IMG/VR virus record: IMGVR_UViG_3300020442_000005
Span: 186,001-250,000 of that record
DNA: 64,000 bases
Direction: 5' to 3' (one strand)
Below, one piece after another: positions 3-43,420 of the stretch. The position numbers and the translations under genes are program-made. The notes beneath the pieces were generated by a model. That model ran no database searches, was not told the origin of the DNA, and saw only the letters and a program-made list of their open reading frames with translations. Every line of letters starts with the position of its first letter. The first letter of the stretch is position 1.

Positions 3-1448
3 GATGACCAAGAAGTGTACAAGGTCTATGAAGAAGGTCGTTGGGCTGGCATCTTCCAGTGTACTAACAACGGCGCGCAAAGATTGTTTCAACGAGCAAA
101 GCCAAAATCCATCCTTGATATTGCTGCTTTGACTTCAATCTATCGTCCTGGTCCGCTTGCTATGAGCATTGACAAGAAATACGTTAAGGCCAAAAACAAT
201 CCGGAAGATATCAAATATGATCATCCCATTCTTGAGGAAATACTTTCAGAAACCTATGGAATGCTAGTGTTTCAGGAACAGACAATGGCCATCGTAAATA
301 GGCTTGGCCAAATACCTTTGGATGAGTGTAACTCAATTCGTAAAATGATGAAACCACAGCAGTCCTCTGCAGAAGCAACGCGTAAAGCGAAAGCACTCAA
401 AAGCCGTATTGTTGATGGGTTTATGGCATCCGGACTAGATCCATATCAGGCTGACAAGCTATACGCAAACATTATGAAGTTTACGGCGTATTCTTTCAAC
501 AAGTCTCATGCTGTGGCATACGCTATGGACTCTTACTATTGTGCATGGCTGATGACATACTATGAAGAGGAGTGGCTCTGTGCATATCTAGAATCCATGG
601 AAAAGAATGCAGACAAGCGTAACAAAGCATTCAGTGAAGTAAAAGCCCTGGGGTATGAAATCGTTCCAATCGATATTAATTATGCAACCGATTCTTGGGC
701 TATCTTAGATGGAAAGAAGTTTATGCCTTCGTTCTCGTCTTGTAAAGGTATTGGAGATGCTGCCATTCATGAGATAATTGCTTTGCGTAATAAGCAGAAG
801 GGCAAGCGTTTTTCTACCATCGAGTCTATCATGTACGACAAAGATATGGTTTGGCAGCTTTCCAAGTTTAATAAGAAGGCAATGGAGGCTCTGGTGAATA
901 TTAAGGCCTTCGATTCTATGAATATAGTTGGCTTATCAAGTCGATTTGAGAATTACAATCATATGCGTGAGGCACTCATCCCGGGATGGCAAAAGTGGAA
1001 AAAGCGCCTGAAGAGTGATCCAAAGAGAGGCTATAACGATATGTTAGCGTCAATTGAGTCGACCGCAGGAACACCGGCGTTTACCAGGAAAGAAATCATC
1101 CAGAATGAAATGAATCATTTAGGATCTGTATCTATCGAAACATTGATACCGCCAAGATATATTGCACGATTCAACGAGGAACAATGGTCTCCAGTTGACG
1201 AGTTTGATAACCCTAACAAGCCCTATTGGTTCGTTGTTGTTCAGGCTGTAAAGAAAAAGACAAAGACTGGAAGAAATTATCTTCGATTGAAAATCATGGG
1301 ATCAAACGGAAAACAGTACTGGTGTAATTGCTGGGGCTGGAACGGTGTCGACACTGTGGATCCATACACGGTTTGTGTAGGTTACATTAGTGAAAACTCT
1401 TTTGGTAAGTCTACAAAATGGTCAAAAATGGAAATATTCCTTGGTTGA
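3..1448 (+). CDS. dnaE: DNA polymerase III alpha subunit (DnaE-type), C-terminal part; 5' end lies outside the window
   Basis: Motifs GIFQC, SIYRPGP, ETYGMLVFQEQ, FTAYSFNKSHAVAY, KGIG (HhH) and a C-terminal OB-like region; frame is open from base 3. Confidence 0.93.
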   Translation, partial: DDQEVYKVYEEGRWAGIFQCTNNGAQRLFQRAKPKSILDIAALTSIYRPGPLAMSIDKKYVKAKNNPEDIKYDHPILEEILSETYGMLVFQEQTMAIVNRLGQIPLDECNSIRKMMKPQQSSAEATRKAKALKSRIVDGFMASGLDPYQADKLYANIMKFTAYSFNKSHAVAYAMDSYYCAWLMTYYEEEWLCAYLESMEKNADKRNKAFSEVKALGYEIVPIDINYATDSWAILDGKKFMPSFSSCKGIGDAAIHEIIALRNKQKGKRFSTIESIMYDKDMVWQLSKFNKKAMEALVNIKAFDSMNIVGLSSRFENYNHMREALIPGWQKWKKRLKSDPKRGYNDMLASIESTAGTPAFTRKEIIQNEMNHLGSVSIETLIPPRYIARFNEEQWSPVDEFDNPNKPYWFVVVQAVKKKTKTGRNYLRLKIMGSNGKQYWCNCWGWNGVDTVDPYTVCVGYISENSFGKSTKWSKMEIFLG

Positions 1449-1504: not shown

Positions 1505-2194
1505 TTGATGAAAACAGTATCTGATGTACGCAATATGTTTGCGCAAAAATACCTCAACAATGAATTTGTTGTCGACAAGTCTGGTTGCAAAATGCTTGAA
1601 GTGCTTGGTGTATCTTTCATTGCTGATGATGAAACCATATTTGGAAAAGTAAACTATGCGTACATTAAGAAAGAACTAGACTGGTATTTAAGTCAATCTC
1701 TCAATGTTTATAACATACCTGATACCCCTACAATCTGGAAGCAAGTTGCGACAGCTGAAGGCCAGATTAATTCCAACTACGGATATCTTATATTTTCTGA
1801 CGTCAATGGCCATCAATACGATTATGCCTTGAAGGCTTTGCTAGCTGATGAAAACACACGTCGTGCTTGCATGATTTACACTCGGCCTTCTATTCAAACT
1901 GAATACAACACGGCTGACATGTCAGATTTTATTTGCACCAATGCGGTAACTTACTTCATAAGAGATAATCGATTGAGCTGTGTTGTGCAGATGCGTTCGA
2001 ATGATATATGGGCTGGATACCGAAACGACTATGCGTGGCAGAAATGGGTATTAGAAAAGCTACATTCAGATCTTTTGAATAAATACGATAATTTAGAAAT
2101 CGGCGATATAATCTGGAACGCTTCTTCTCTACACATGTATGAAAGAAACTTTGGGTTAATAAGAAAATTTAATAAAATCGGTCTTTACAAATAG
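1505..2194 (+). CDS. dCMP hydroxymethylase (T4 gp42-like, thymidylate synthase fold)
   Basis: Collinear with T4 gp42 as recalled: FVVDKSG, KELDWY, INSNYG, MIYTRPS, MSDFICTN (catalytic Cys), MRSNDxxxGYRNDYAWQK (Asp where ThyA has Asn), WNASSLHMY. Confidence 0.85.
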   Translation: MMKTVSDVRNMFAQKYLNNEFVVDKSGCKMLEVLGVSFIADDETIFGKVNYAYIKKELDWYLSQSLNVYNIPDTPTIWKQVATAEGQINSNYGYLIFSDVNGHQYDYALKALLADENTRRACMIYTRPSIQTEYNTADMSDFICTNAVTYFIRDNRLSCVVQMRSNDIWAGYRNDYAWQKWVLEKLHSDLLNKYDNLEIGDIIWNASSLHMYERNFGLIRKFNKIGLYK

Positions 2195-19119: not shown

Positions 19120-20709
19120 ATGCCTGAAGCAGCGAAGAAAAAGTTAATATTTCATGACGAAGCCCGATCTATACTTTTAGACGGAGTGAACAAGTTGGCT
19201 GATGCTGTCAGTGTTACAATGGGTCCGGGTGGTCTTAATGTAGTAATACAAAGAGAGAACTCGGTACCTATTCTAACAAAGGACGGTGTGACTGTTGCAC
19301 GTGCAATTAATTTACCAGATGAAATGGAAAATTTGGGAGTGCAGCTAGTGAAAGAGGCAGCTCAAGGGGCAGCTGATATAGCCGGAGATGGTACAACTAC
19401 ATCGACCGTGTTGGCTCGTGAAATTTTCTCGCTGGGCTTGAGAGCCATGGCCGCTGGAAACAGTTCCGTCGATATTAGGGAAGGCCTGCGCCAAGCCGGC
19501 GAGGAAGCTATCAAGCTGATAAACCAAAACTCGATACCAATTCAGACTGACGAACAAATAAAGCAGGTTGGTACCATATCAGCAAACGGTGAGGAAGAAA
19601 TCGGTCAGTATTTAGCAAACGCAATGTCCGCAGTCGGAAGAGAAGGCATCATTGCAGTTGAAGAAGCGAAGGGCTTTAAAACCAGTCTTGAAAAAGTGTC
19701 AGGTACCAGAATCGACCGAGGATTCGTAAGCCCATATTTTATTAACAATGCAGCGAAAAGTCATTGCGTTCTTAATAAACCAAAGGTACTACTTGCCAAC
19801 AGAAAAATTAGCTCGATGCGTGAACTGTTGCCGTTGTTAGAAGCTGCGCATGAACGTCAGAAACCAATATTGATTATTGCGGATGAAGTGGAAGGCGAGG
19901 CTTTAAACGGACTTGTAGTAAACGCCTCCAATGGAACTATCAAGGTTTGCGTAATCAGACCGCCAGAGTTCGGTCAAAATAGACTAGGTGCAATGGAGGA
20001 TTTGGCAGTCCTTTTGGGAACAAAAGTATATCGATCATCTGATGATCTTGCAACCGTAAATTTTGACACTCTCGGTACCGCAAAAAAGATTACTGTCAAA
20101 AAAACAGAGACAGTTATTCTTGAGCCAGGAGGAGACGAGGTTGAAATAGTCAAACAGAAGGATTCTATCCGTGAAGAACTTGCCACACCTGGACTGGAAA
20201 AATCTCTGAACGACGCCCTGCAACGAAGGTTGTCACGATTGGCAGACGGAATTGCAATTATAAGAGTTGGTGGCGCAACGGAAGCAGAGCTAAGAGAAAG
20301 AAAGGATCGAGTCGAAGACGCTTTACACGCAACGAGAGCCGCTGCAAATAAAGGGATTCTACCGGGTGGAGGAACGGCATTGCTGAGAGTTTCAGAAAAA
20401 ATAAAAGTTCCAGACGATGAACGTCTGCATGCAGGTTTTAGAATAATACAATTGGCCTGTAGAAAACCACTTACTCAAATCGTAAATAATGCTGGAATGG
20501 TACCCGAAGTAATTATTGAAAAGGTGTTGGCATCAGATAACTTTGATTATGGGTATAACGCTAGAACAAACACTTTTGGAGATTTGAAGGAAATGGGAGT
20601 CATTGATCCAACTTTAGTCCTGGTGTCAGCTTTAAGACACAGTGTTTCAGCGGCAGATAATTTGCTCAGCGTAGCCTGTGCAATGCATGATATAGATTCT
20701 AAATTCTAG
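19120..20709 (+). CDS. groEL: group I chaperonin GroEL
   Basis: LADAVSVTMGPGG, TKDGVTVA, AGDGTTT, QVGTISANG, RVEDALHATRAA, PGGG, GVIDP; no GGM tail. Confidence 0.95.
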   Translation: MPEAAKKKLIFHDEARSILLDGVNKLADAVSVTMGPGGLNVVIQRENSVPILTKDGVTVARAINLPDEMENLGVQLVKEAAQGAADIAGDGTTTSTVLAREIFSLGLRAMAAGNSSVDIREGLRQAGEEAIKLINQNSIPIQTDEQIKQVGTISANGEEEIGQYLANAMSAVGREGIIAVEEAKGFKTSLEKVSGTRIDRGFVSPYFINNAAKSHCVLNKPKVLLANRKISSMRELLPLLEAAHERQKPILIIADEVEGEALNGLVVNASNGTIKVCVIRPPEFGQNRLGAMEDLAVLLGTKVYRSSDDLATVNFDTLGTAKKITVKKTETVILEPGGDEVEIVKQKDSIREELATPGLEKSLNDALQRRLSRLADGIAIIRVGGATEAELRERKDRVEDALHATRAAANKGILPGGGTALLRVSEKIKVPDDERLHAGFRIIQLACRKPLTQIVNNAGMVPEVIIEKVLASDNFDYGYNARTNTFGDLKEMGVIDPTLVLVSALRHSVSAADNLLSVACAMHDIDSKF

Positions 20710-31703: not shown

Positions 31704-32015
31704 ATGGAGATTATTTTGAGCCAACATTTATATATCATTCAATCAGATAAAACGGGATCCTTAAAAATTGGAAGAAGCAAAGATCCAGAAAAAAGATTAA
31801 AACAGCTTCAGACGGGATCCCCATATTCTTTGCGTTTAATATTGATTATCGAGAATAGCGGCCACATGGAAAAACAGCTGCACAATCACCTGAAGCGATA
31901 TAAAGAAAGACGTCGTGGTGAATGGTTTGATTTTGAATGTGCAGGATCATTGCCCGACTGGATATGTGAAATGATAAACTGGGATGAAGCAAATGTCTGG
32001 TGGAACAAAAATTAA
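31704..32015 (+). CDS. T5orf172/MUG113 GIY-YIG-like protein
   Basis: LYII....LKIGRS.DPEKRLKQLQTGSP...EKQLH...RGEWF. Confidence 0.85.
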   Translation: MEIILSQHLYIIQSDKTGSLKIGRSKDPEKRLKQLQTGSPYSLRLILIIENSGHMEKQLHNHLKRYKERRRGEWFDFECAGSLPDWICEMINWDEANVWWNKN

Positions 32016-32379
32016 TTATTATATGATCTTTGGTGTTAAGCCTGATGCAGATCAATCTGAGATAAAGAGTCGCTATAAAAAACTGGCAATGCAGTTCCAC
32101 CCAGACATGGCCACTGGTGACGAAGAGTATTTTAAACTAGTAACCCAAGCCTACTCAATCCTCAGCGATCCGTATAAACGTGCGGTATACAACATAGATC
32201 TATTTTCTGGTTCACTTTCTCATATTGAAAACACCAAATCTTTATGCCCAGTGTGCAACGGGAATGGATCTTATGTTTCGAAAGTTAAATATGGAAGGTA
32301 CAAAGTGGATTCAAAAATAGTTTGTACAACATGCAGAGGGACTGGTATTATAGTAAGTGAAAATCCTATTGGAGAATAA
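31984..32379 (+). CDS. mini DnaJ-like protein (J domain plus two CxxCxGxG)
   Basis: YKKLAMQFHPD, AYSILSD, CPVCNGNG, CTTCRGTG. Confidence 0.85.
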   Translation: MKQMSGGTKINYYMIFGVKPDADQSEIKSRYKKLAMQFHPDMATGDEEYFKLVTQAYSILSDPYKRAVYNIDLFSGSLSHIENTKSLCPVCNGNGSYVSKVKYGRYKVDSKIVCTTCRGTGIIVSENPIGE

Positions 32380-32517
32380 ATGTATTATGTTAGGAGCGTC
32401 GTTAGATTTATAAGTCAACGGCTATGTAAACCAAAAACAATAAACAAAGAATTAGATCCGGAGTACTGTGATGCCTGTGAATGCACGCCCTGTGATTGCG
32501 GATTTGGGAGTTATTAA
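32380..32517 (+). CDS. 45-aa Cys-rich peptide (not in ORF track)
   Basis: GGAG RBS; ends YCDACECTPCDCGFGSY; TAATG-coupled to metK. Confidence 0.6.
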   Translation: MYYVRSVVRFISQRLCKPKTINKELDPEYCDACECTPCDCGFGSY

Positions 32518-33500
32518 TGTCATTTAAAAATTATAGAACAGCAGAATGCGTCACACCAAAACATCCGGACAAAATTTGTGATACGATTTCTGACGCAATC
32601 TTAGACCATTGTCTTAAGTCAGATCCATATTCTCGAGTTGCCATTGAGACTGCTGGCGGCCATGGCCATATTCACATCACTGGTGAGATTACAACAAATG
32701 CCTTTTTGCCGCTTGAAGAAATTGCAACAGAGGTTTATGGAAAGCCAATCAAAGTTACGACCAATGTTGTACAACAAAGCAATGAGATCGCGCAAGGTGT
32801 TGACACAGGTGGAGCCGGAGATCAAGGGATTATGGTAGGCTATGCATGCGATCACAATCCAGAAATGATTCCAAACGAGTTGTTTCTTTCAAGACAGATC
32901 TGCAAAGAAATATTTAAAGCCTTTCCGTTTGATGGTAAAACACAGGTCACTCTAGAAAACAACAAAATCAAGACAGTTGTTGCCAGTTTTCAAAACGCTC
33001 CGAAAACAGAACTGACAAGAATCATCAATGGTTGGCTAAGGTCTTGTAGTTTTCCAGTCGATGATAACGTTACCCTTCACTGTAACCCAGCTGGAGATTG
33101 GAAAGTCGGTGGCTTTGATGCGGATGCCGGACTTACCGGTAGAAAGATCGTGATTGATAACTATGGCCCAGCTATCCCAGTCGGTGGAGGAGCATTCTCT
33201 GGTAAAGATCCAACAAAAGTAGATCGGTCCGCCGCATATATGGCTAGAAAAATTGCTGTAGATCACTTGCAACTTCTTCCAAAAAGAAAAGATGGAAACG
33301 AAATCTACGTTTATCTTGCTTATGCTATTGGCTATGACCAACCTGTACAAGCAACGATGATCGTTAACGGAAAAGAGAAATTAGTAACTGGATACGATTT
33401 AAGTCCGAACGGAATTATTGAGCATCTGGATCTAAGAAAACCAAAGTACTTTGAAACTGCACGTTGGGGCCATATGGGCACTGACCAAACATGGGGATAA
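32517..33500 (+). CDS. metK: S-adenosylmethionine synthetase (compact form)
   Basis: ECVTPKHPDKICDTISD, GAGDQG, DGKTQVT, DAGLTGRK, GGGAFSGKDPTKVDRS. Confidence 0.95.
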   Translation: MSFKNYRTAECVTPKHPDKICDTISDAILDHCLKSDPYSRVAIETAGGHGHIHITGEITTNAFLPLEEIATEVYGKPIKVTTNVVQQSNEIAQGVDTGGAGDQGIMVGYACDHNPEMIPNELFLSRQICKEIFKAFPFDGKTQVTLENNKIKTVVASFQNAPKTELTRIINGWLRSCSFPVDDNVTLHCNPAGDWKVGGFDADAGLTGRKIVIDNYGPAIPVGGGAFSGKDPTKVDRSAAYMARKIAVDHLQLLPKRKDGNEIYVYLAYAIGYDQPVQATMIVNGKEKLVTGYDLSPNGIIEHLDLRKPKYFETARWGHMGTDQTWG

Positions 33501-33501
33501 A

Positions 33502-33945
33502 ATGAGTTCTGAATCAACACCAAAACCAAAAAGAAAAAGAAACTGGGCAAAGAACAGAGATATTCTGAAAGCTATACCAAACCCTTCCGGGGATGCGTAT
33601 GAGATTAAAATGAAAATACCTGAGCTTACATTTGAAGGTGTTCGATCTCAGCCGGATTTTGCTAATCTGTATATCACTTTTTACCCGGGCAAAAAAGTTA
33701 TTGAGCTTAAGTCATTGAAAGAATATTTCTTTGCTTTTAGATCACAAATATATTCATATGAAAGAATCATCAATGTTATCTACGATGATATGATGGCTGT
33801 GTATGAACCAACAAGATTGCGACTGGTCATGACTTGTAATCCTCGTGGTGGGATCTCGTCTAAATTAACTGTAGATTCAGACTGGGGAGTTCGTGGTGGC
33901 AATGACCAGTTTATGGATTGGGTAGGGCAAAAAGAAGAATGGTAA
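33502..33945 (+). CDS. QueF-like T-fold protein lacking the catalytic Cys
   Basis: IPNP, PELT, QPDFA, ELKSLK, YE, PRGGIS; TFEGV replaces TSLCP. Confidence 0.8.
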
Positions 33946-36900
33946 GTTTTGATAAAAATCAGATCTATATTATTGATGGTGCAATGGGCACCGAAATACA
34001 GAAAAGACAGGTTGAATCCAAATTCTTTAAATACGAAGGAATCGACTGCGATGGCTTTAATGATATTTTGGTGCTCACCAAACCCGGCCTGATAAAAGAT
34101 ATACACGGTGATTACATCAACTCCGGCGCAAATATCATTGAGACAAATACCTTTAACGCTAATTATATTTCAGCGTTAGATTACGGACTTAGTGATGGAG
34201 CGATCGATAAAATAAACTTTAGCGCTGCCAAAATTGCAAAACAGGCTGCAAAAAAATCTAAAGAAGAGGTGTATGTAGCCGGTGTTTTAGGCCCGACTTC
34301 AAAAACTTTAAGCATGTCACCAAACGTTACAGATCCTTCTTATAGAGATATCACGTACCATGAATTACTCAATGCTTATAAAGCCGCAACTGAAAATCTA
34401 ATTCGTGGTGGCGCAGATTTGATTTTAATCGAAACAGTCTTTGACACACTTAATGCCAAGGCTGCGATTGAGGCTGTGAGACTGGTAGGAGAAGATATTC
34501 CTATCATGATATCAGGTACAATCGTTGACATGTCTGGTCGGACTTTATCTGGCCAGACTGTCGAGGCTTTTTGGAATTCCATTAAACACGCAAGGCCTAT
34601 TAGTGTTGGTTTGAATTGTGCGCTAGGTGCAAAGCAAATGGATCCATTTCTGCGGCGTCTAGCAGACGTCAGTGGTTGCGCAATCAGCGCACATCCGAAC
34701 GCGGGGTTACCAAACGAATTAGGTGAATACGACCAATCCCCGTCTGATATGGCAAACTATATTAAGAACTGGGCAAAAGCCGGGATTGTAAATATAATAG
34801 GTGGATGTTGTGGGTCGACTCCGGATCACATCAAAAAGATAGCCAACACCGTAAAAAAGTTTAAACCCAAAAGGCACATAACCAGAAGTTTTAATTTGGA
34901 CCGGTCAATGATTCTTTCTGGTTTAGAGGTCTTTGATAGCAAAGGAAAGAACTTTATTAATATTGGCGAGCGAACAAACGTCACTGGGTCTTCAAGGTTT
35001 AAAAAATGTATCGTAGAAAAAAGATATGATGATGCGTTGAATATTGCTCGTTCGCAGATTCTAAATGGCGCCCAGATTATCGATATCAATATGGACGATG
35101 GACTCTTAGATTCTAAGAGTGAAATGATTAATTTTTTAAAAATGTTGGCATGCGAGCCTGATATTGCAAAAGTACCAATCATGCTTGATTCTTCGAAGTG
35201 GGATATCCTATCGGAAGCCATGAGATGGATACAAGGGAAAGGTATTGTAAATTCAATTTCTCTTAAAGATGGAGAATCAGACTTTCTTGCCCGGGCAAAA
35301 GAAATTGTTTCGTGCGGACACGCTTTTGTGGTAATGGCTTTTGATGAAAAAGGGCAGGCTGATACTTTTGATAGAAAAATAGAGATATGTGAACGCGCTT
35401 ATTGGATTTTAGTTAACGCAGGAATAAAGCCACAAGACATTATTTTTGATCCAAATATCTTTGCAATCGCCACCGGGATAGAAGAACACGACAACTATGC
35501 AGTCGACTTTATAACTGCTACTGCATGGATTAAAAAGAACCTGCCTGGATGCTACGTCTCCGGAGGATTATCAAACCTATCATTCTCTTTCAGGGGAAAT
35601 CCTCGCGTGAGAGAGATGATGCATTCCGTCTTTTTGTTTCATGCTATCAAAGCCGGGTTGGACATGGCGATTGTAAACGCAGGTCAACTAATGGTGTACG
35701 ACCAGATCGATCAAGGCCATCGGGACATTGTTGAATCTGTTATTTTAAATAAGCATGAAGAAGCATCGGCACAGCTTTTAGAATTAGCAAAATCTCTATC
35801 TGGTAAAACCCGAGTAGAATCTAACGGGTTCCAAGAATGGCGTAACGAAGAGGTTGAAGAAAGAATATCTTTTGCCCTTATAAACGGTATCGATAAATTT
35901 ATCGTCGAAGATGTCAAGGAATGTTACAACAAAATAGGCTCGGCATTAAACGTTGTTGAAGGACCGTTGATGGATGGTATGAACGTAGTTGGAGACCTTT
36001 TTGGCTCCGGTAAAATGTTTTTACCTCAAGTAGTCAAGTCAGCGCGTGTAATGAAAAAAGCAGTCTCGTGGCTCGAGCCTTTTATGGTTGGCACAGATGA
36101 AGCAATACAGAGGGAAAAAATACTGCTTGCCACAGTTAAAGGCGACGTTCATGACATTGGAAAAAACATTGTTAGTATAGTTCTTCAATGTAATGGATAC
36201 GAGATAGTTGATCTAGGAGTCATGGTTCCATTAGAAAAGATACTAGAGGAAGCTGATAAACACCAGGTTGCAGCAATCGGTCTTAGCGGATTGATTACAC
36301 CAAGTTTAGATGAGATGGTTAAAGTTGCTCGAGCAATGAATGAAAGACAAATGGATATACCTTTACTAATTGGTGGAGCAACAACATCAAAAGTTCACAC
36401 GGCAATCAAAATATCTCCGGAGTACTCAAAAACAGTATATATACAAAATGCATCGATTGCAGTCGGAATTGTTAATGACGTGTTAAGTAAGAGTGATGCA
36501 TTCGATAAGATTAATAGGGATTATGAAGAAACTAGGGAGAGAAGAAACTCGAGAAAGCAAACGTTTGTAAGTGTTTCTGATGCAAGAAGAAATGCATATC
36601 AGCTAAAAGGAAAGCCACAGATTCCAGATAACTTTGGAATGACTATCAAAAGCAAAGCTTCAGTTTCAGAGATCATACCATATATTGATTGGGCACCGTT
36701 TGCAATGACTTGGGGAATGAAACCAAAAGATCTTACAAGCCAAGTCGGTAAAGATCTAATGAAGGATGCCCGAGAAATGCTTCGAAAACTTGATGATAAG
36801 ATTGTAGTTAACTATTCATTTGCTATCGATAAATGTACAAAAACAAATAATGACGATGTACTGGTGAAAAGACCGGATAAATCAACGACTTTTAATTTCA

Positions 36901-37454
36901 TGAGGCAAGCAACAAAAAAATCTCGGCCGAATCTTTGTTTGACAGATTTCTTACATCAGGAAGATTGGATAGGGTCTTTTGCGGTCTGGGTGTGCGGAAT
37001 CGATAAGAGAGCAGACATGCTCAGATTAGCCAACGATGATTACGGATCGATCATGATGCAAGCGCTTGGGGATAGACTCGCCGAAGCAACGGCTGAATGG
37101 CTACACGAGAGGGTTCGTAAGTCATGGTGGGGTTACTCAAAAGACGAAAACTTGACAAATACCGACCTTATAAAAGAGCGTTACTTAGGAATCAGGCCAG
37201 CACCCGGATATCCAGCCTGTCCGGATCATACCCAGAAGATAAAAATATTAAACTGGTTAGAAATTAGTGATACAATAGAGCTGACCGAGGGTTTAACAAT
37301 GTCGCCAAAGTCCGCAATATGTGGTTGGTACTTTGCAAGTGCAGAATCAAAATACTTCGGTGTTGGAAAAATACCAGACGAATACGTAGAAGATTTAAAA
37401 GAAAGAAATCCATATCTAAAAAAATACAAAAATCATATAACGGGAGTTAGTTAA
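33939..37454 (+). CDS. metH: cobalamin-dependent methionine synthase, full four-module form
   Basis: [51 protein letters not shown]. Confidence 0.96.
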
Positions 37455-37455
37455 C

Positions 37456-38784
37456 ATGGATAAATTTACAGATTACAAAGTCGCAGATACAAATCTATGG
37501 CGTTGGGGAAAAGACGAGGTAGAATTAGCAGAACATGAAATGCCAGGCCTCATGGCACTGCGTGAAAAGTATGCAGCAGACAAACCACTTCAAGGAGCTA
37601 GAATTGCCGGGTGTTTGCATATGACAATCCAGACCGCTGTTTTAATCGACACTCTTGTCGAGCTTGGCGCAGATGTACGTTGGATGACGTGTAATATCTA
37701 TTCGACACAAGATCACGCCGCGGCATACATTGCAGAGCAGCAAATCCCAGTGTTTGCTTGGAAGGGAATGACCGAGGATGACTATGAGGAATGTTTAGAA
37801 AAAGTCTTATGGTTCGATGAAGGCGTAGGTCCAAACATGATTCTAGATGACGGTGGTGACCTCACAGGATATATCCTGAAGAACCATCCGGATCTTTATA
37901 AGGATATTAAGGGTATCTCCGAAGAGACAACTACTGGTGTTTTAAGATTGGTAGAGTATCAAAACGATGGGGTCCTGCCGGTACCTTGCTTTAACGTTAA
38001 CGATTCTGTTACTAAATCAAAGTTTGACAACAAGTACGGATGTCGTGAGTCGTGTGTTGATGCGATTCGAAGAGCGACAGACATCATGATGGCGGGAAAA
38101 GTTGCGACTGTGGCTGGCTATGGCGACGTAGGTAAAGGTTCTGCTGCTAGTCTGTCCGCGGCTGGCTGTCGTGTTATTGTCACTGAGATCGATCCAATCT
38201 GTGCATTGCAAGCCGTAATGGACGGATTCCAGGTTTTACCTATGGACGAAGCGGTTAAGCAATCCGACATTGTAGTTACAGCAACCGGTAATTGCGACGT
38301 GGTTAGATCAGAACATTTTTCCAATATGAAAGACAACGTTATCGTTTGTAACATTGGACATTTTGATAACGAGATCGATGTAGCATGGTTAAACGAGAAC
38401 TTCGAATCCAAAAACGTAAAACCACAGGTCGACGTATATTATCTTCCGTCCGGACTGACTGATAATAAACCAAATCCTCCGTACAAGAAGATCGTTCTGT
38501 TAGCACAGGGAAGACTAGTGAATCTAGGTTGCGCCACCGGGCATCCAAGCTTTGTTATGTCCTGTTCTTTTGCAAATCAGGTACTTGCACAGATCGAGTT
38601 ATTTTTGAACTCTGATAATTATGAAAATAAAGTTTATGTGCTCCCAAAGATTCTTGACGAAGAGGTTGCCAGATTGCATCTCGATCACGTTGGCGCCAAA
38701 CTCGATAAACTTTCAAACGTTCAGTCGAAATACATTGGCGTGAAACAAACCGGTCCATTTAAGTCTGACGAATATCGTTACTAG
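37456..38784 (+). CDS. ahcY: S-adenosylhomocysteine hydrolase
   Basis: [62 protein letters not shown] end. Confidence 0.96.
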
Positions 38785-38806
38785 ATTTAAAACACTGCGC
38801 CAATGG

Positions 38807-38893: not shown

Positions 38894-40030
38894 ATGAAAA
38901 CAATAGAGGAATATGATTTTACTGAGCTGGATAATAAGTTCGAATCAAAACTGAGACCAGACACCAAGAGAAAAATCATTCGAACAATTAACATGGGCAA
39001 GTCTGTTGATTATATACCAGACTTTAATAAGCCTCCTCAAGCTCGAGCATACTATCTAGATAATTTCCTAGTGTATGTTGATCACGAGGATAGAAAAAAA
39101 ATACTGAATGTATATTGGAATAAAAAGCTAATTGACACTAAGCTGCGAGATATCGAAAATTTTGAGCTCAAAAAACCTTTAAGAATTTCCGGAAGAGATA
39201 GTAGCCACATCTTTTCTAGAACCATTGCGCGAGTAATTTCCAAGAAAGAAATATTAAATTGCCTGGCTAACGGCGCACAAGTAAAGAACTTTAGTAAAAC
39301 TCAGAAACCAGACGGATCATTTTATGTTTTCTATGACAGATACTACTTTGCTGACGATGTGTGCGTCGTAGCTTCTGAGACTAAGAACTATATAAATGTA
39401 CGTACTGTTTATCGAACAACTCCAATCGCAGATCAACATTTTCTCGATTTGCTTCCCAAGCTCATTAATGAACTGAAAATAAATGAAAGTAGCAACGTAA
39501 GGGCTTCTATCGTAAACAACTCTGCCCGAATGAAATATCTGCAGACAAAGGAATACATGGACTTGCAATTATTCTTGAGAACTATCAGTGGCAACAATCC
39601 ATTTGTACAAGAAGAATCACTTGAGAAAGTAATCGATCAAAAATCTGTTTTGATGCCTAAGATTCTCCAATCCGCGGCAGCTGCCCGATTAAGATGCAAA
39701 GATATCGAATATTATGTTGCAACAACTGAAAACAGCGAAAGTCGATCAAATATAAATGATTTTGTTCTGGAGTCCAACAAATCCTACAGTCTCCAGCTGT
39801 CATTTGATAACGTGAATGATAAAACCATCGACAAGAATAGAGCGGTTACACTTAGAGAGTACGGTATTGACATTGATAAATATGAACACAGTTTAAATAT
39901 TGAAAACAACAAAGCGATTCTTACGATTGATTTTAGTCATTTTTCTGCTGCAGAAAATCCTTGGGCCATCAGAAAGAACAAGAAAAACCTTTCATTTGGA
40001 TCTTTTGATTTAGAGGAGAGCGAGGTATGA
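38894..40030 (+). CDS. hypothetical protein
   Basis: 378-aa ORF with GGGAG RBS. Confidence 0.7.
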   Translation: MKTIEEYDFTELDNKFESKLRPDTKRKIIRTINMGKSVDYIPDFNKPPQARAYYLDNFLVYVDHEDRKKILNVYWNKKLIDTKLRDIENFELKKPLRISGRDSSHIFSRTIARVISKKEILNCLANGAQVKNFSKTQKPDGSFYVFYDRYYFADDVCVVASETKNYINVRTVYRTTPIADQHFLDLLPKLINELKINESSNVRASIVNNSARMKYLQTKEYMDLQLFLRTISGNNPFVQEESLEKVIDQKSVLMPKILQSAAAARLRCKDIEYYVATTENSESRSNINDFVLESNKSYSLQLSFDNVNDKTIDKNRAVTLREYGIDIDKYEHSLNIENNKAILTIDFSHFSAAENPWAIRKNKKNLSFGSFDLEESEV

Positions 40031-40488
40031 AAAGATTGTGGAACCCACCGTTGCTCAATGAATGGGCTGAGCCTTTAATACAAGAGAGATATTTCCCGGA
40101 TAGATGGAAGATGCTGGTATGTTGTCTAATGTTAAATCTGACGTCACATAAACAGGTCAATCCAATCATCGATGGCTTTTTCGAAAGATGGCCCACCGCT
40201 TTGAAAGCTTCTCAGGCTGATGAGTTAGAGATGAAAGAGTATCTAAAATCCTTGGGAATGTATAACAAGCGTGCAAAAACAATTATAAAAATGTCAAAAC
40301 AGTTTCTAGAAGGCTTTTCTCAGCCAAAACAATTATATGGATGCGGTAAATACGCGTCAGACTCTGATCTTATATTCTATCAGGGAAGATGGAAAGAGGT
40401 TGAACCAACCGATGGCGCGCTCAAGAGATATATACGATTTATGAAAAACTATGAAAAAAACCGTGTACAATCGATCAAAACGGCTTAA
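40027..40488 (+). CDS. MBD4-like HhH mismatch DNA glycosylase
   Basis: W.PP, LIQE...D.WKMLVCCLMLNLT, LGMYNKRAKTI, LYGCGKYASDS, W..VEPTD (catalytic Asp). Confidence 0.82.
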   Translation: MKRLWNPPLLNEWAEPLIQERYFPDRWKMLVCCLMLNLTSHKQVNPIIDGFFERWPTALKASQADELEMKEYLKSLGMYNKRAKTIIKMSKQFLEGFSQPKQLYGCGKYASDSDLIFYQGRWKEVEPTDGALKRYIRFMKNYEKNRVQSIKTA

Positions 40489-41097: not shown

Positions 41098-41147
41098 GGT
41101 ACCGGTGTCAAAACACCAAACAGTTCTTTTAAATCGCAGTAAACTTT

Positions 41148-41231
41148 GCTCGGGTGGCGGAATCGGTAGACGCACCAGACTTAAAATCTGTTGTCCGTAT
41201 GGGCGTGAGGGTTCAAGTCCCTCTTCGAGCA
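41148..41231 (+). tRNA. tRNA-Leu (UAA)
   Basis: Cloverleaf; anticodon loop cttaaaa; long variable arm; T arm gaggg-ttcaagt-ccctc; CCA not encoded. Confidence 0.93.
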
Positions 41232-41391
41232 TTACAATAGGGAATACCTGAGGGGAAGGTATTTTAAATGAGATTGACCTGAAGCTAGATATTACGCTGG
41301 GATCCACAACGAACTTTTATATGATCGACCGCTATAATCTAGAACATCCGCCCTTTCATTTCTTTAAACAATAATTAATTAGGTTATACAA

Positions 41392-41781
41392 ATGGAATTA
41401 ACAAATGGCCAGATTGAGATAGGTATAGTGTTTTTCTATGGCTTTGTAGCAGGATTAGTTGTCAGTATTCTGTATGCTCATGAGCGTTGGAAAAACTTCA
41501 ACTACGACGAGGAACGACGGTTACAATATCAAAAAGAAACGGATGAAAGAAGAAGGATACGCCTTGAGAAATATAAAGAGATGAGAAATCCTGAATCTCA
41601 GTTACGAGTGATACATAAGCAGGAAGAATATATAAGAGAATTACTCTTAGAGCAAGCTAGACTGCACAAACAACTCAATGCATTCGCTGGATGGCCTGAA
41701 TATGAACACTTCCACGAAGATCTTATGAAAAAAATCGACAAACGATTTGAATCTTTACGAATTGAACATGATAACATTTGA
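41392..41781 (+). CDS. N-terminally anchored membrane protein
   Basis: TM segment IGIVFFYGFVAGLVVSILYA followed by coiled coil. Confidence 0.6.
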   Translation: MELTNGQIEIGIVFFYGFVAGLVVSILYAHERWKNFNYDEERRLQYQKETDERRRIRLEKYKEMRNPESQLRVIHKQEEYIRELLLEQARLHKQLNAFAGWPEYEHFHEDLMKKIDKRFESLRIEHDNI

Positions 41782-41828
41782 ACAACTACAGGACTATCTG
41801 TATAATAACTAGGTAAACAAAACTTCAT

Positions 41829-41902
41829 GCATCCATAGCTCAGCTGGATAGAGCATCCGCCTTCTAAGCGGACGGTCGCAGGTTCGAATCCTGCTGGATG
41901 TA
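41829..41902 (+). tRNA. tRNA-Arg (UCU)
   Basis: Cloverleaf; tccgc-cttctaa-gcgga. Confidence 0.95.
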
Positions 41903-41906
41903 CTTT

Positions 41907-41978
41907 TGGTCTGTAGTGTAATAGGTAACACACCAGTTTTTGGCACTGGCGTTCTAGGTTCAAGTCCTGGCAGACCAG
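41907..41978 (+). tRNA. tRNA-Gln (UUG)
   Basis: tggtctg/cagacca acceptor; ccagt-ttttggc-actgg. Confidence 0.92.
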
Positions 41979-42017
41979 CTTTTATACAACTTTAAACAAT
42001 AGGGTATTATTATTTAT

Positions 42018-42120
42018 GGGTCTAGTTAACCTCGAGGGTTCGAACCCCTCTATGACCAAGCAGGCAGGGAGCAATGACTAGATGTCGCCAACAGAAAGAT
42101 ATTCACCAGTATCTCCTTTT
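42018..42120 (+). ncRNA. candidate structured RNA containing an isolated T arm
   Basis: gaggg-ttcgaac-ccctc inside an outer stem tctagtta/tgactaga; promoter-like sequence upstream and terminator-like hairpin plus T run downstream. Confidence 0.45.
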
Positions 42121-42189
42121 GGTTGATAAGCCTTGGGATAGGAAAGTGGTGAGTCCTATCCCAAAGTTCCATCCTTAACTTCATCACAC

Positions 42190-42262
<73 letters not shown>

Positions 42263-42265
42263 TAG

Positions 42266-42338
42266 GCGGGAATAGCTCAGTTGGTAGAGCACCACGTTGC
42301 CAACGTGGAAGTCGCGAGTTCAAGTCTCGTTTCCCGCT
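42266..42338 (+). tRNA. tRNA-Gly (GCC)
   Basis: Cloverleaf; ccacg-ttgccaa-cgtgg. Confidence 0.95.
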
Positions 42339-42343
42339 CTTTT

Positions 42344-42416
42344 GGACACTTAGCTCAGCGGTCAGAGCATCCGACTCATAATCGGCAGGTCCAGGGTTCA
42401 ATCCCCTGAGTGTCCA
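42344..42416 (+). tRNA. tRNA with CAU anticodon (Met or lysidine-modified Ile2)
   Basis: Cloverleaf; loop ctcataa; G1-C72 paired, so not an initiator. Confidence 0.9.
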
Positions 42417-42421
42417 CTTTC

Positions 42422-42562: not shown

Positions 42563-43420
42563 ATGATCGGACATACACCATTCATCTGTATTGACAATGA
42601 TGAAAGAATATGGGCAAAACTAGAAACACACAATAAAACCGGATCTGTAAAAGATCGAATGATTGATTACATATGCGATAATGCTCTTGCAAATGGTGCA
42701 ATCATTCCTGGAAAGACCCGGCTCATTGAGGCAACCAGTGGAAATACTGGAATTGCTTTAGCCAGTTATGCAGCCTCAGTGGGATGCAAATGCCAAATCA
42801 TAATGCCATGTAACATGTCGGAAGAAAGAAAACAAATGATGCATGCGTTCGGCGCCGAAATTATAGAAACCGGCCCAAACGAATTTGGACGTGCAATTGC
42901 GATGAGAGACTTGAAACTGCGGAAGTCTAACCCCGGAGAATATTTCTCGCCTCTTCAATTTAGTAATCCTTTAAATGTGGAATGTCACAGAACAACCACA
43001 GCGCCAGAGATTCACCAGAACATAACAGACATTAAGTGTCTCGCTTGGGATGCATTCGTGCATGGCTCTGGAACTGGAGGGACTATGATGGGATTGAAGA
43101 GTTACATTGATGAGAATAGGTTAGGAGTGAAATGCGTCTTAACTCAGCCGGAAGAAGATAACGCATCCCATGGAATACAGGGCATTAACGATGGTGCTGA
43201 TTTTCTATTAGATAAGTCATTGATGGATGAGTTTATATACGTGAAGACGTCCTCAGCAATTGAACGAATGAAGAGATTCTGGAAAGAAAATGGTATCCTG
43301 ATCGGCATCAGTTCCGGGGCAAACATTCTGGCTGCAGAAGAATACGTGAGAAAGCATGATCCAGCTGGAATCGTCGTCACTATTTTATGTGATCGTGGAG
43401 AAAGATATTTAAAATGTTGA
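42563..43420 (+). CDS. cysK: cysteine synthase (PLP-dependent, CysK/CysM family)
   Basis: KLE..NKTGSVKDR, EATSGNTG, GSGTGGT, HGIQGI, GISSGAN, DRGERYL. Confidence 0.88.
   Translation: MIGHTPFICIDNDERIWAKLETHNKTGSVKDRMIDYICDNALANGAIIPGKTRLIEATSGNTGIALASYAASVGCKCQIIMPCNMSEERKQMMHAFGAEIIETGPNEFGRAIAMRDLKLRKSNPGEYFSPLQFSNPLNVECHRTTTAPEIHQNITDIKCLAWDAFVHGSGTGGTMMGLKSYIDENRLGVKCVLTQPEEDNASHGIQGINDGADFLLDKSLMDEFIYVKTSSAIERMKRFWKENGILIGISSGANILAAEEYVRKHDPAGIVVTILCDRGERYLKC

Follow-up and report, generated by a model that had tools for sequence, protein, structure and literature searches.

A cysteine-less relative of QueF as a candidate methylenetetrahydrofolate reductase of bacteria and large marine phages

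What might a protein with the fold of a queuosine enzyme be doing amongst the genes of the methionine cycle, once the cysteine on which its chemistry depends has gone? The question is raised by a 64,000-nucleotide stretch of phage DNA (the window), which corresponds to bases 186001-250000 of the IMG/VR virus record IMGVR_UViG_3300020442_000005. The record is 273,025 bp in length, is estimated to be 82% complete and belongs to a large marine phage of about 40% G+C in which one strand codes for nearly all of the genes. At 33502-33945 of the window, on the plus strand, an open reading frame of 147 codons encodes a protein of the QueF family, whose canonical members reduce the nitrile of 7-cyano-7-deazaguanine (preQ0), and it is this protein that has lost the catalytic cysteine. 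It belongs to a monophyletic clade of cysteine-less sequences, viral as well as bacterial, to which the name QueF* is given here. We are highly confident that QueF* serves folate-dependent metabolism of methionine and one-carbon units, and not the synthesis of queuosine. Its conserved residues and genomic contexts suggest that it is probably an NAD(P)H-dependent, flavin-free 5,10-methylene-tetrahydrofolate (methylene-THF) reductase, and hence an analogue of MetF.

A cysteine-less QueF within a methyl-cycle cassette

QueF* is the second of four genes that form a single close-packed unit, all of which are involved, or proposed to be involved, in the cycling of methionine and S-adenosylmethionine (SAM):

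32496-33500, plus strand: metK, S-adenosylmethionine synthetase, with all three S-AdoMet synthetase domains by Pfam; translation probably begins at the ATG at 32517
33502-33945, plus strand: QueF*, cysteine-less QueF-family T-fold protein, recognised by PF14489, TIGR03139, the alignment at Gly46 and an AlphaFold2 (AF2) model
33918-37454, plus strand: metH, cobalamin-dependent methionine synthase of the five-domain form (S-methyl_trans, Pterin_bind, B12-binding_2, B12-binding and Met_synt_B12 by Pfam); the likely start is the in-frame ATG at 33939
37456-38784, plus strand: ahcY, S-adenosylhomocysteine hydrolase (AdoHcyase 424 bits, AdoHcyase_NAD 250 bits)

A single nucleotide separates the stop of metK from the ATG of QueF*, and another single nucleotide the stop of metH from the start of ahcY. 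The gene is placed between metK and metH, as described in the original prediction made for this locus, with the metH ATG at 33939 overlapping the QueF* stop (GAATGGTAA); this overlap suggests translational coupling. No match to PF02219, the family of methylenetetrahydrofolate reductase (MTHFR, or MetF), is present in the 273,025-bp record, and MetF is precisely the one enzyme that is absent from the metK-QueF*-metH-ahcY cassette.

QueF (PF14489) is the only Pfam family matched by the window protein (76.5 bits, cut-off 27.3), which also passes the NCBIfam equivalog model for preQ(1) synthase, TIGR03139 QueF-II, at 93.7 bits (cut-off 86.9). A phmmer search of the PDB matches it to Bacillus subtilis QueF (4f8b; E=6.6e-16, 35% identity). 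The AF2 model, with a predicted local distance difference test score (pLDDT) of 89 and a predicted template modelling score (pTM) of 0.82, superimposes on 4fgc/4f8b with a root-mean-square deviation of 1.3-1.4 A over 109 columns, and the top PDB matches are all QueF. Structures of FolE are only remote T-fold matches of the model (13-17% identity), and FolE (PF01227) is matched neither by the window protein nor anywhere in the record; the PHROG name for the protein, ‘GTP cyclohydrolase’, is a legacy label for QueF.

In the alignment with 4f8b, Cys55 of the B. subtilis enzyme falls on Gly46 (segment PEFTSLCPKTGQPDF) in a loop that is one residue shorter. D52, E68 and E87 correspond to Asp62, Glu78 and Glu97, the PRGGIS strand is retained, and the NADPH-binding ‘QueF motif’, E(S/L)K(S/A)hK(L/Y)(Y/F/W), is kept as E68-L-K-S-L-K73-E-Y75. 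In QueF, Cys55 forms the thioimide, Asp62 acts as the proton donor and Glu78 and Glu97 anchor the substrate, according to a 2026 review of the family (PMC13740343). The cysteine is essential for nitrile activation in both QueF and QueF-L (PMC13740343; titles of PDB entries 4f8b and 5jyx). The original prediction, which had noted the retained signature residues, the loss of the thioimide cysteine and the need of both enzymes for it, agrees with the alignment and with the literature on all three counts. A relocated nucleophile was considered and rejected, as the sole cysteine, C112 (TCNPRGG), is only 73% conserved in the clade and is otherwise replaced in distant members.

The QueF* clade is large. 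A word-indexed protein search with the window protein returned 1079 proteins, the best 120 of which are at least 81% identical, derive from marine metagenomes and almost all contain a common 14-residue segment. When 50%-identity representatives were searched exhaustively, 1460 clusters matched, and amongst the best 150 of these the cysteine-less signature (E-x-T-F-x-G ... QPDF) is found in 72 and the canonical signature in 25. When 127 cysteine-less sequences (59 viral, 68 cellular) were placed in a tree with 12 canonical QueF, they formed one group, and the branch that divides them from canonical QueF has a length of 1.23 substitutions per site and a Shimodaira-Hasegawa-like approximate likelihood ratio (SH-aLRT) support of 100. 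The viral and cellular sequences are interleaved within the group, requiring at least seven switches between the two.

Comparison of the same 127 sequences with 25 canonical QueF, column by column, reveals glycine at the position of the catalytic cysteine in 127/127 of the former and cysteine in 25/25 of the latter. D52, E68 and E87 are invariant across the clade, and G46, F44, S85, Y86 and K73 are invariant or nearly so. Within the NADPH motif, E68, S71 and K73 are conserved at 100%, K70 at 95% and Y75 at 99%. The invariant positions that are specific to the clade are F44 (Ser in canonical QueF), G46 (Cys), V47 (Pro), S85 (Phe), R88 and Y101. To these can be added I25, which stands in place of the preQ0 stacking residue Phe33, and a tail at the C terminus, DSDW..RGG..DW..W, that is likewise conserved. 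Purifying selection acts on the gene: comparisons of the window gene with its nearest relatives give a dN of 0.04-0.13 with saturation at synonymous sites, and over 149 viral pairs with unsaturated dS the ratio dN/dS has a median of 0.146 and a maximum of 0.30. Relaxed selection, named in the original prediction as a sign that would speak against a new function, is not seen, either in this ratio or in the invariant glycine.

Methionine operons, a SAM riboswitch and the distribution of MetF

The clearest indication of function comes from bacteria. A scan of one genome per GTDB species identified 207 cellular relatives, which share about 58-69% identity with the window protein and belong to Chitinophagaceae, Cyclobacteriaceae/Flammeovirgaceae, Flavobacteriales, Syntrophorhabdaceae, further Thermodesulfobacteriota and some Bacillota. 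The gene recurs in three conserved contexts, in each of which the neighbours share its strand. About 29 Chitinophagaceae loci have a Cys_Met_Meta_PP enzyme (metY/metB-like) followed by QueF* and then by homoserine dehydrogenase (hom); some of these loci add, ahead of QueF*, an alpha/beta hydrolase, for which Pfam shows the fold only and which is probably the homoserine acyltransferase MetX. In 11 loci of Cyclobacteriaceae, Flammeovirgaceae and Crocinitomicaceae, QueF* is found between the two halves of a split metH, preceded by a 332-aa homocysteine S-methyltransferase (S-methyl_trans) and followed by an 883-897-aa pterin-binding/B12/activation gene, with start/stop overlaps or gaps of 13-68 bp. 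The third context, in about 13 loci, is that of the ‘delta’ group (Syntrophorhabdaceae and related Thermodesulfobacteriota metagenome-assembled genomes, MAGs), where a SAM methyltransferase, an unknown 123-aa gene and thyX precede QueF*. A full-length metH adjoins QueF* in a Halanaerobiales MAG (metH - QueF*) and is adjacent to it, in divergent orientation, in several Chitinophagales MAGs. The genes are closely spaced in the Chitinophagaceae and split-metH contexts and in the Halanaerobiales MAG. No hidden reductase was seen in the QueF* operons.

A SAM-I riboswitch (Rfam, 72-86 bits; gathering threshold 44.4) precedes the QueF* operon at close range, with matching orientation, in 10 of the 18 loci scanned, and is found ahead of the divergent metH in two further loci. 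In at least two phyla, therefore, QueF* belongs to the methionine/SAM regulon. A comparable arrangement is familiar from B. subtilis YitJ, the product of an S-box gene, in which a homocysteine S-methyltransferase domain and a canonical MetF domain are fused in one polypeptide. The architecture of YitJ under its SAM riboswitch parallels the operon of S-methyl_trans, QueF* and the C-terminal half of MetH, with the difference that the reductase of YitJ is a fused MetF domain whereas QueF* is a separate T-fold gene.

The relationship with MetF was followed in 81 genomes drawn evenly from the Cyclobacteriaceae, the family to which a complete Marinoscillum MAG belongs. Six of the 81 carry QueF*, and all six are without MTHFR (PF02219), which is absent from only eight of the genomes (these six and two others) and present in 73 of the 75 that have no QueF*. 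The activation domain of MetH is found in 79/81, and these MetH-bearing genomes divide into 72 with MetF, six with QueF* and a single fragmented assembly with neither gene; in no case do the two occur together. The one-sided Fisher probability of about 9e-8, which ignores relatedness, overstates the independence of these genomes because the QueF* tree suggests only one or two events. In 58 of the 73 MetF-positive genomes metF follows metH directly and in the same orientation, and thus QueF* sits in an operon from which metF is missing; in this family it occupies the operon where metF normally sits.

Across all taxa, 24 of 67 QueF*-bearing cellular genomes have no MTHFR. They include 10/10 Cyclobacteriaceae/Flammeovirgaceae, 3/3 Flavobacteriales and 3/3 of a Sphingobacteriales-like group, together with several Chitinophagales MAGs, a Halanaerobiales MAG and Syntrophorhabdus aromaticivorans UI, and MetH is still encoded elsewhere in 7/7 additional MTHFR-less Bacteroidota tested. 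FolA, the dihydrofolate reductase (DHFR), is encoded by 17 of 22 tested Bacteroidota that carry QueF*, and on all three of the complete chromosomes, so the gap that is filled there is that of MetF and not of DHFR. Replacement of FolA was accordingly rejected for the Bacteroidota, with the delta group standing outside that rejection.

A number of observations weigh against QueF* as a substitute for MetF. QueF* and canonical MetF are found together in every Chitinophagaceae genome tested, and MetF also coexists with it in one Crocinitomicaceae genome with the split-metH arrangement and in Bacteroidales. The delta group carries weaker MetF-like matches alongside QueF*, which in these genomes follows thyX rather than met genes and is not accompanied by FolA. 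Only one or two evolutionary events may lie behind the Cyclobacteriaceae pattern, the sampled genomes come without completeness values, and a very divergent MetF could escape PF02219. Phages add to the difficulty, since about 60 of 70 related phage loci have no met gene within 8 kb of QueF*, and the window locus alone consequently lends only weak support to a role in folate and SAM metabolism. The original prediction had proposed that the neighbourhoods of cysteine-less homologues be scored, and the outcome is one of methionine operons in bacteria and few met neighbours in phages.

The proposed reaction and its rivals

In the second half-reaction of QueF, NADPH delivers a hydride to an exocyclic C=N carbon that is attached to a 2-amino-pyrimidinone ring next to its 4-oxo side, Asp62 acting as the acid, and T-folds bind pterins via the same conserved glutamate. 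As a methylene-THF reductase, QueF* would be a neofunctionalised QueF that no longer reduces the nitrile of preQ0 and converts 5,10-methylene-THF into 5-methyl-THF, the methyl donor of MetH. The 2-amino-4-oxo ring of the pterin would be held by E87 and E68, much as preQ0 is held in QueF. D52 would protonate N10, with opening of the imidazolidine ring to the N5-iminium, and NADPH bound on the ELKSLKxY motif would transfer its hydride to the exocyclic methylene carbon, the position of which relative to the pyrimidinone ring would be that of the exocyclic C=N carbon in the second half-reaction of QueF. No covalent cysteine adduct would be required, because the iminium would already be electrophilic; the cysteine would be superfluous, serving nitrile activation only. 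The changes of Cys to Gly, Pro to Val and Phe95 to Ser, along with the one-residue deletion in the loop, may have provided room for the C6 side chain. We infer this folate binding and reaction geometry from homology alone.

Within the phage cassette, MetK would convert methionine to SAM, AhcY would convert S-adenosylhomocysteine (SAH) to homocysteine, MetH would return homocysteine to methionine and QueF* would regenerate the methyl-THF. Together, the four proteins would regenerate SAM from SAH with one-carbon units derived from serine or glycine. Phages with QueF* alone would be supplying the MetH of the host.

Several known systems bear comparison with such an enzyme. The unimodular QueF (YkvM type; B. 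subtilis, 4F8B/4FGC), an NADPH-dependent preQ0 reductase, is homologous to QueF*, with which it has in common the T-fold, the NADPH motif, the equivalents of Asp62, Glu78 and Glu97 and the PRGG strand. QueF* differs from it in the replacements Cys55 to Gly, Pro56 to Val, Ser53 to Phe, Phe95 to Ser and Phe33 to Ile, in the shorter Cys loop and in the added C-terminal tail. QueF-L, the archaeosine synthase of Crenarchaeota (5JYX; Foldseek E ~1e-5 to QueF*), is a T-fold paralogue of QueF with a changed reaction, which keeps the catalytic cysteine and is without the NADPH motif (PMC10516641); QueF* is its reverse, with the NADPH motif kept and the cysteine lost. MetF (PF02219), an FAD-dependent TIM barrel, would catalyse the same reaction as QueF*, with which it shares the SAM-riboswitch regulon and the metH-adjacent operon. 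The two are mutually exclusive in Cyclobacteriaceae, a likeness that is weakened by their coexistence in Chitinophagaceae. Whereas MetF is a TIM barrel of about 300 aa, QueF* is a T-fold of about 145 aa with no sequence or fold kinship to it and no flavin-binding features, and would be at most a functional analogue of MetF and not a member of its family. An unrelated precedent for the proposed direct hydride transfer is offered by Mfr, the flavin-independent MTHFR of mycobacteria, in which the hydride passes directly from NAD(P)H (PMC11094777).

The retained NADPH motif, glutamate anchors and aspartate would serve equally well in an NADPH-dependent reductase of some other folate or pterin, be it a dihydrofolate or dihydropterin reductase or an enzyme that runs the MTHFR reaction in reverse and draws methylene-THF out of the methyl-THF pool for thymidylate synthesis. 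Such a role is possible, if rather doubtful. It draws support from the roughly 13 delta-group loci in which ThyX is immediately upstream of QueF* in genomes that have no FolA, and from the phage record itself, in which ThyX and a ThyA-like gene are accompanied by no DHFR. Against this, the FolA of most QueF*-bearing Bacteroidota leaves no DHFR gap to be filled, the complementary distribution is with MetF and not with FolA, the SAM riboswitch points to methionine supply, and ThyX occurs in only four of 20 QueF*-carrying phage records. It is unlikely that QueF* is non-catalytic, a T-fold binder of folates or purines that acts as a chaperone, sensor or regulator of MetH or of the methyl cycle, even though its nucleophile has been lost, T-folds bind pterins and purines, and several lineages show the gene in close coupling to metH. 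Conservation of the NADPH motif and of the general-acid aspartate extends throughout 127 sequences, and neither would be needed for mere binding, and a chaperone fails to explain why MetF is absent exactly where QueF* occupies the metH operon. The original prediction had left the choice between a new T-fold activity and a ligand-binding role tied to folate and SAM cycling; the cellular operons, the riboswitch and the complementarity with MetF strongly support the tie to folate and SAM cycling and allow it to be narrowed to a MetF-like reductase, and a pure ligand-binding role is less likely because the NADPH motif is conserved and the aspartate invariant.

There is very little likelihood that QueF* is still a preQ0 reductase, or some other 7-deazaguanine enzyme that works independently of the cysteine, for instance in preQ0 salvage. 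The protein does score above the TIGR03139 cut-off, it retains all of the polar residues that contact preQ0, and it is the sole PF14489 member in ten QueF*-bearing genomes that were checked, five of which (delta group and Bacillota) contain QueC. Yet the Cys55 that is essential for nitrile activation (PMC13740343) is replaced by an invariant glycine, a strong argument against any residual QueF-like role. The original prediction had recognised no queC, queD, queE, folE or dpdA in the window, and neither QueC, TGT/DpdA, FolE nor PTPS/QueD is found in the whole 273,025-bp record, QueE not having been searched for. Amongst 20 long viral records of related phages, six of which are at least 90% complete, TGT/DpdA is found in none and QueC in one (absent in 19/20). 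None of the tested Bacteroidota with QueF* has a true QueC. Of 71 genomes sampled from the delta order, 20 contain QueF*, 5 canonical QueF and 42 QueC, with QueF* in 13/42 QueC-positive and 7/29 QueC-negative genomes and hence no association between the two. Genes for que or tgt functions are never beside QueF*, the operon and riboswitch contexts being those of methionine, or of thyX. The QueF* clade is thus most probably unrelated to 7-deazaguanine metabolism. Finally, the loss of a catalytic residue might be taken to mark a decaying or inert remnant of QueF, a reading that is already refuted by the selection and conservation data and retains practically no probability: there are more than 1000 close homologues, the cysteine-less form dominates the best 150 of 1460 50%-identity clusters, the replacement glycine is invariant, dN/dS is 0.15 with synonymous sites saturated, and synteny is conserved in regulated operons.

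With the methylene-THF reductase as the preferred reading, the balance tips slightly towards QueF* being a new class of MTHFR: a small, flavin-free enzyme, built on the T-fold of a queuosine enzyme minus its cysteine, that would feed MetH in MetF-less Bacteroidota and others and that would be widespread as an auxiliary metabolic gene of large marine phages. For bacteria with MetH and no recognisable MTHFR, it provides a candidate gene, operon and riboswitch for the missing MetF step. If the reading is true, loss of the nucleophile has turned an enzyme that reduces a nitrile by four electrons into one that reduces an iminium, on a related pterin scaffold, by two, and the likely consequence would be a new enzyme class for a textbook reaction. 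No description of a cysteine-less QueF, of QueF with MTHFR, of a T-fold MTHFR or of QueF in a SAM regulon was found in the literature searched, with subscription literature outside that search.

There are also consequences for annotation. The cysteine-less bacterial proteins (loci L085-L163, for example L086:7998-8447 and L087:7968-8402) are named ‘preQ(1) synthase’ or ‘7-cyano-7-deazaguanine reductase’ in RefSeq/IMG. The public ‘preQ(1) synthase’ annotation of QueF* is probably wrong and the TIGR03139 equivalog model probably over-reaches, because the window protein itself passes its cut-off. Thousands of ‘preQ(1) synthase’ database entries would, if the reading is true, be mis-annotated, and such misnaming misleads reconstructions of queuosine metabolism as well as predictions of 7-deazaguanine modification of phage DNA. 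The finding suggests that many large marine phages manipulate the one-carbon and SAM supply of the host; a few carry the whole methyl cycle, and some phages would, on the same condition, assemble a complete SAM-regeneration cycle around QueF*.

Phage neighbourhoods and other genes of the record

The viral side was surveyed in 70 IMG/VR loci and six assembly loci, where the genes that flank QueF* vary with the phage subgroup. Amongst them are PolIII alpha, ClpP, DUF2452, glycosyltransferases and sugar-nucleotide enzymes, with PrkA/SpoVR, a PP-loop ATPase and GS-like proteins as further neighbours. A metK, metH or ahcY gene is beside QueF* in only about 8/70 loci. Met genes nevertheless recur beside QueF* in varied orders: ahcY-metK-QueF*-metH in a 256-kb Tara contig (L001), metK-QueF* in L007 and QueF*-ahcY in L008 and L020. 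A metK of different origin (35-36% identity) lies directly upstream of QueF* in L063 and, in L069, about 3 kb away on the opposite strand. An obligate link of the phage gene to met genes was rejected on these counts, as was an obligate link to ThyX, given the four records out of 20 that contain it. Modification of phage DNA with 7-deazaguanine was also rejected as a role, there being no DpdA/TGT in the record or in the 20 related records.

Some further loci deserve mention. A DUF2452 protein is encoded immediately downstream of QueF* in about 12 of the viral loci L036-L055. QueF* homologues with 53-67% identity over the matched part are found in L065, L068 and L069, which are IMG/VR contigs labelled GVMAG (giant-virus MAGs). 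In L084 (NHDW01000006.1, 305,838 bp, labelled Methylococcaceae bacterium TMED69) an 83%-identical QueF* is followed by a 1199-aa metH; this QueF* falls inside the phage clade of the tree, and the contig looks like a phage genome that has been binned into a bacterial MAG. The only fusion partners seen in homologues are a Lar zinc-finger and an apparent FliM chimera (P0222), neither of which is informative. The former is found in P0126, a metagenomic protein of 293 aa in which a Lar restriction-alleviation zinc-finger domain precedes the QueF* part. In the delta-order sample, 29/42 QueC-positive genomes are without any PF14489 QueF, and the five genomes with canonical QueF have no QueC at E<=1e-20, a pattern that is odd for queuosine metabolism.

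Other genes of the phage record are as follows, with window coordinates unless stated otherwise:

15-1448, plus strand: PolIII-alpha (DnaE) polymerase, C-terminal part
1505-2194, plus strand: thymidylate-synthase-family protein of 229 aa, short and divergent (PF00303, 45.6 bits)
19120-20709, plus strand: GroEL-type chaperonin (Cpn60; 202 bits)
31704-32379, plus strand: T5orf172/MUG113 protein overlapping a DnaJ-domain protein with a zinc-finger centre
40027-40488, plus strand: HhH-GPD glycosylase
41147-42417, plus strand: six tRNA genes (Leu-TAA, Arg-TCT, Gln-TTG, Thr-TGT, Gly-GCC, Met-CAT)
42563-43420, plus strand: pyridoxal phosphate (PLP)-dependent PALP-family enzyme of 285 aa, cysteine-synthase/cystathionine-beta-synthase-like (185 bits)
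176843-177454 of the record, outside the window: ThyX

The ThyA-like protein at 1505-2194 could be a pyrimidine hydroxymethylase, a type of enzyme that is used by some phages for the hypermodification of DNA. The PALP-family gene, just after the tRNA cluster, is possibly a fifth sulphur-amino-acid gene of the phage.

A nucleotide search of the phage collection gave no near relative. The cassette (window 32400-38800) is present in marine metagenomes from several studies dating from 2014 to 2025, and the search of sequencing runs with it returned DNA metagenomes only and no RNA runs. One very small run of 3 million letters (X4, ‘organism A’, 2018) contains 38% of the cassette words; it may be a single-cell genome, and could reveal the host of the phage.

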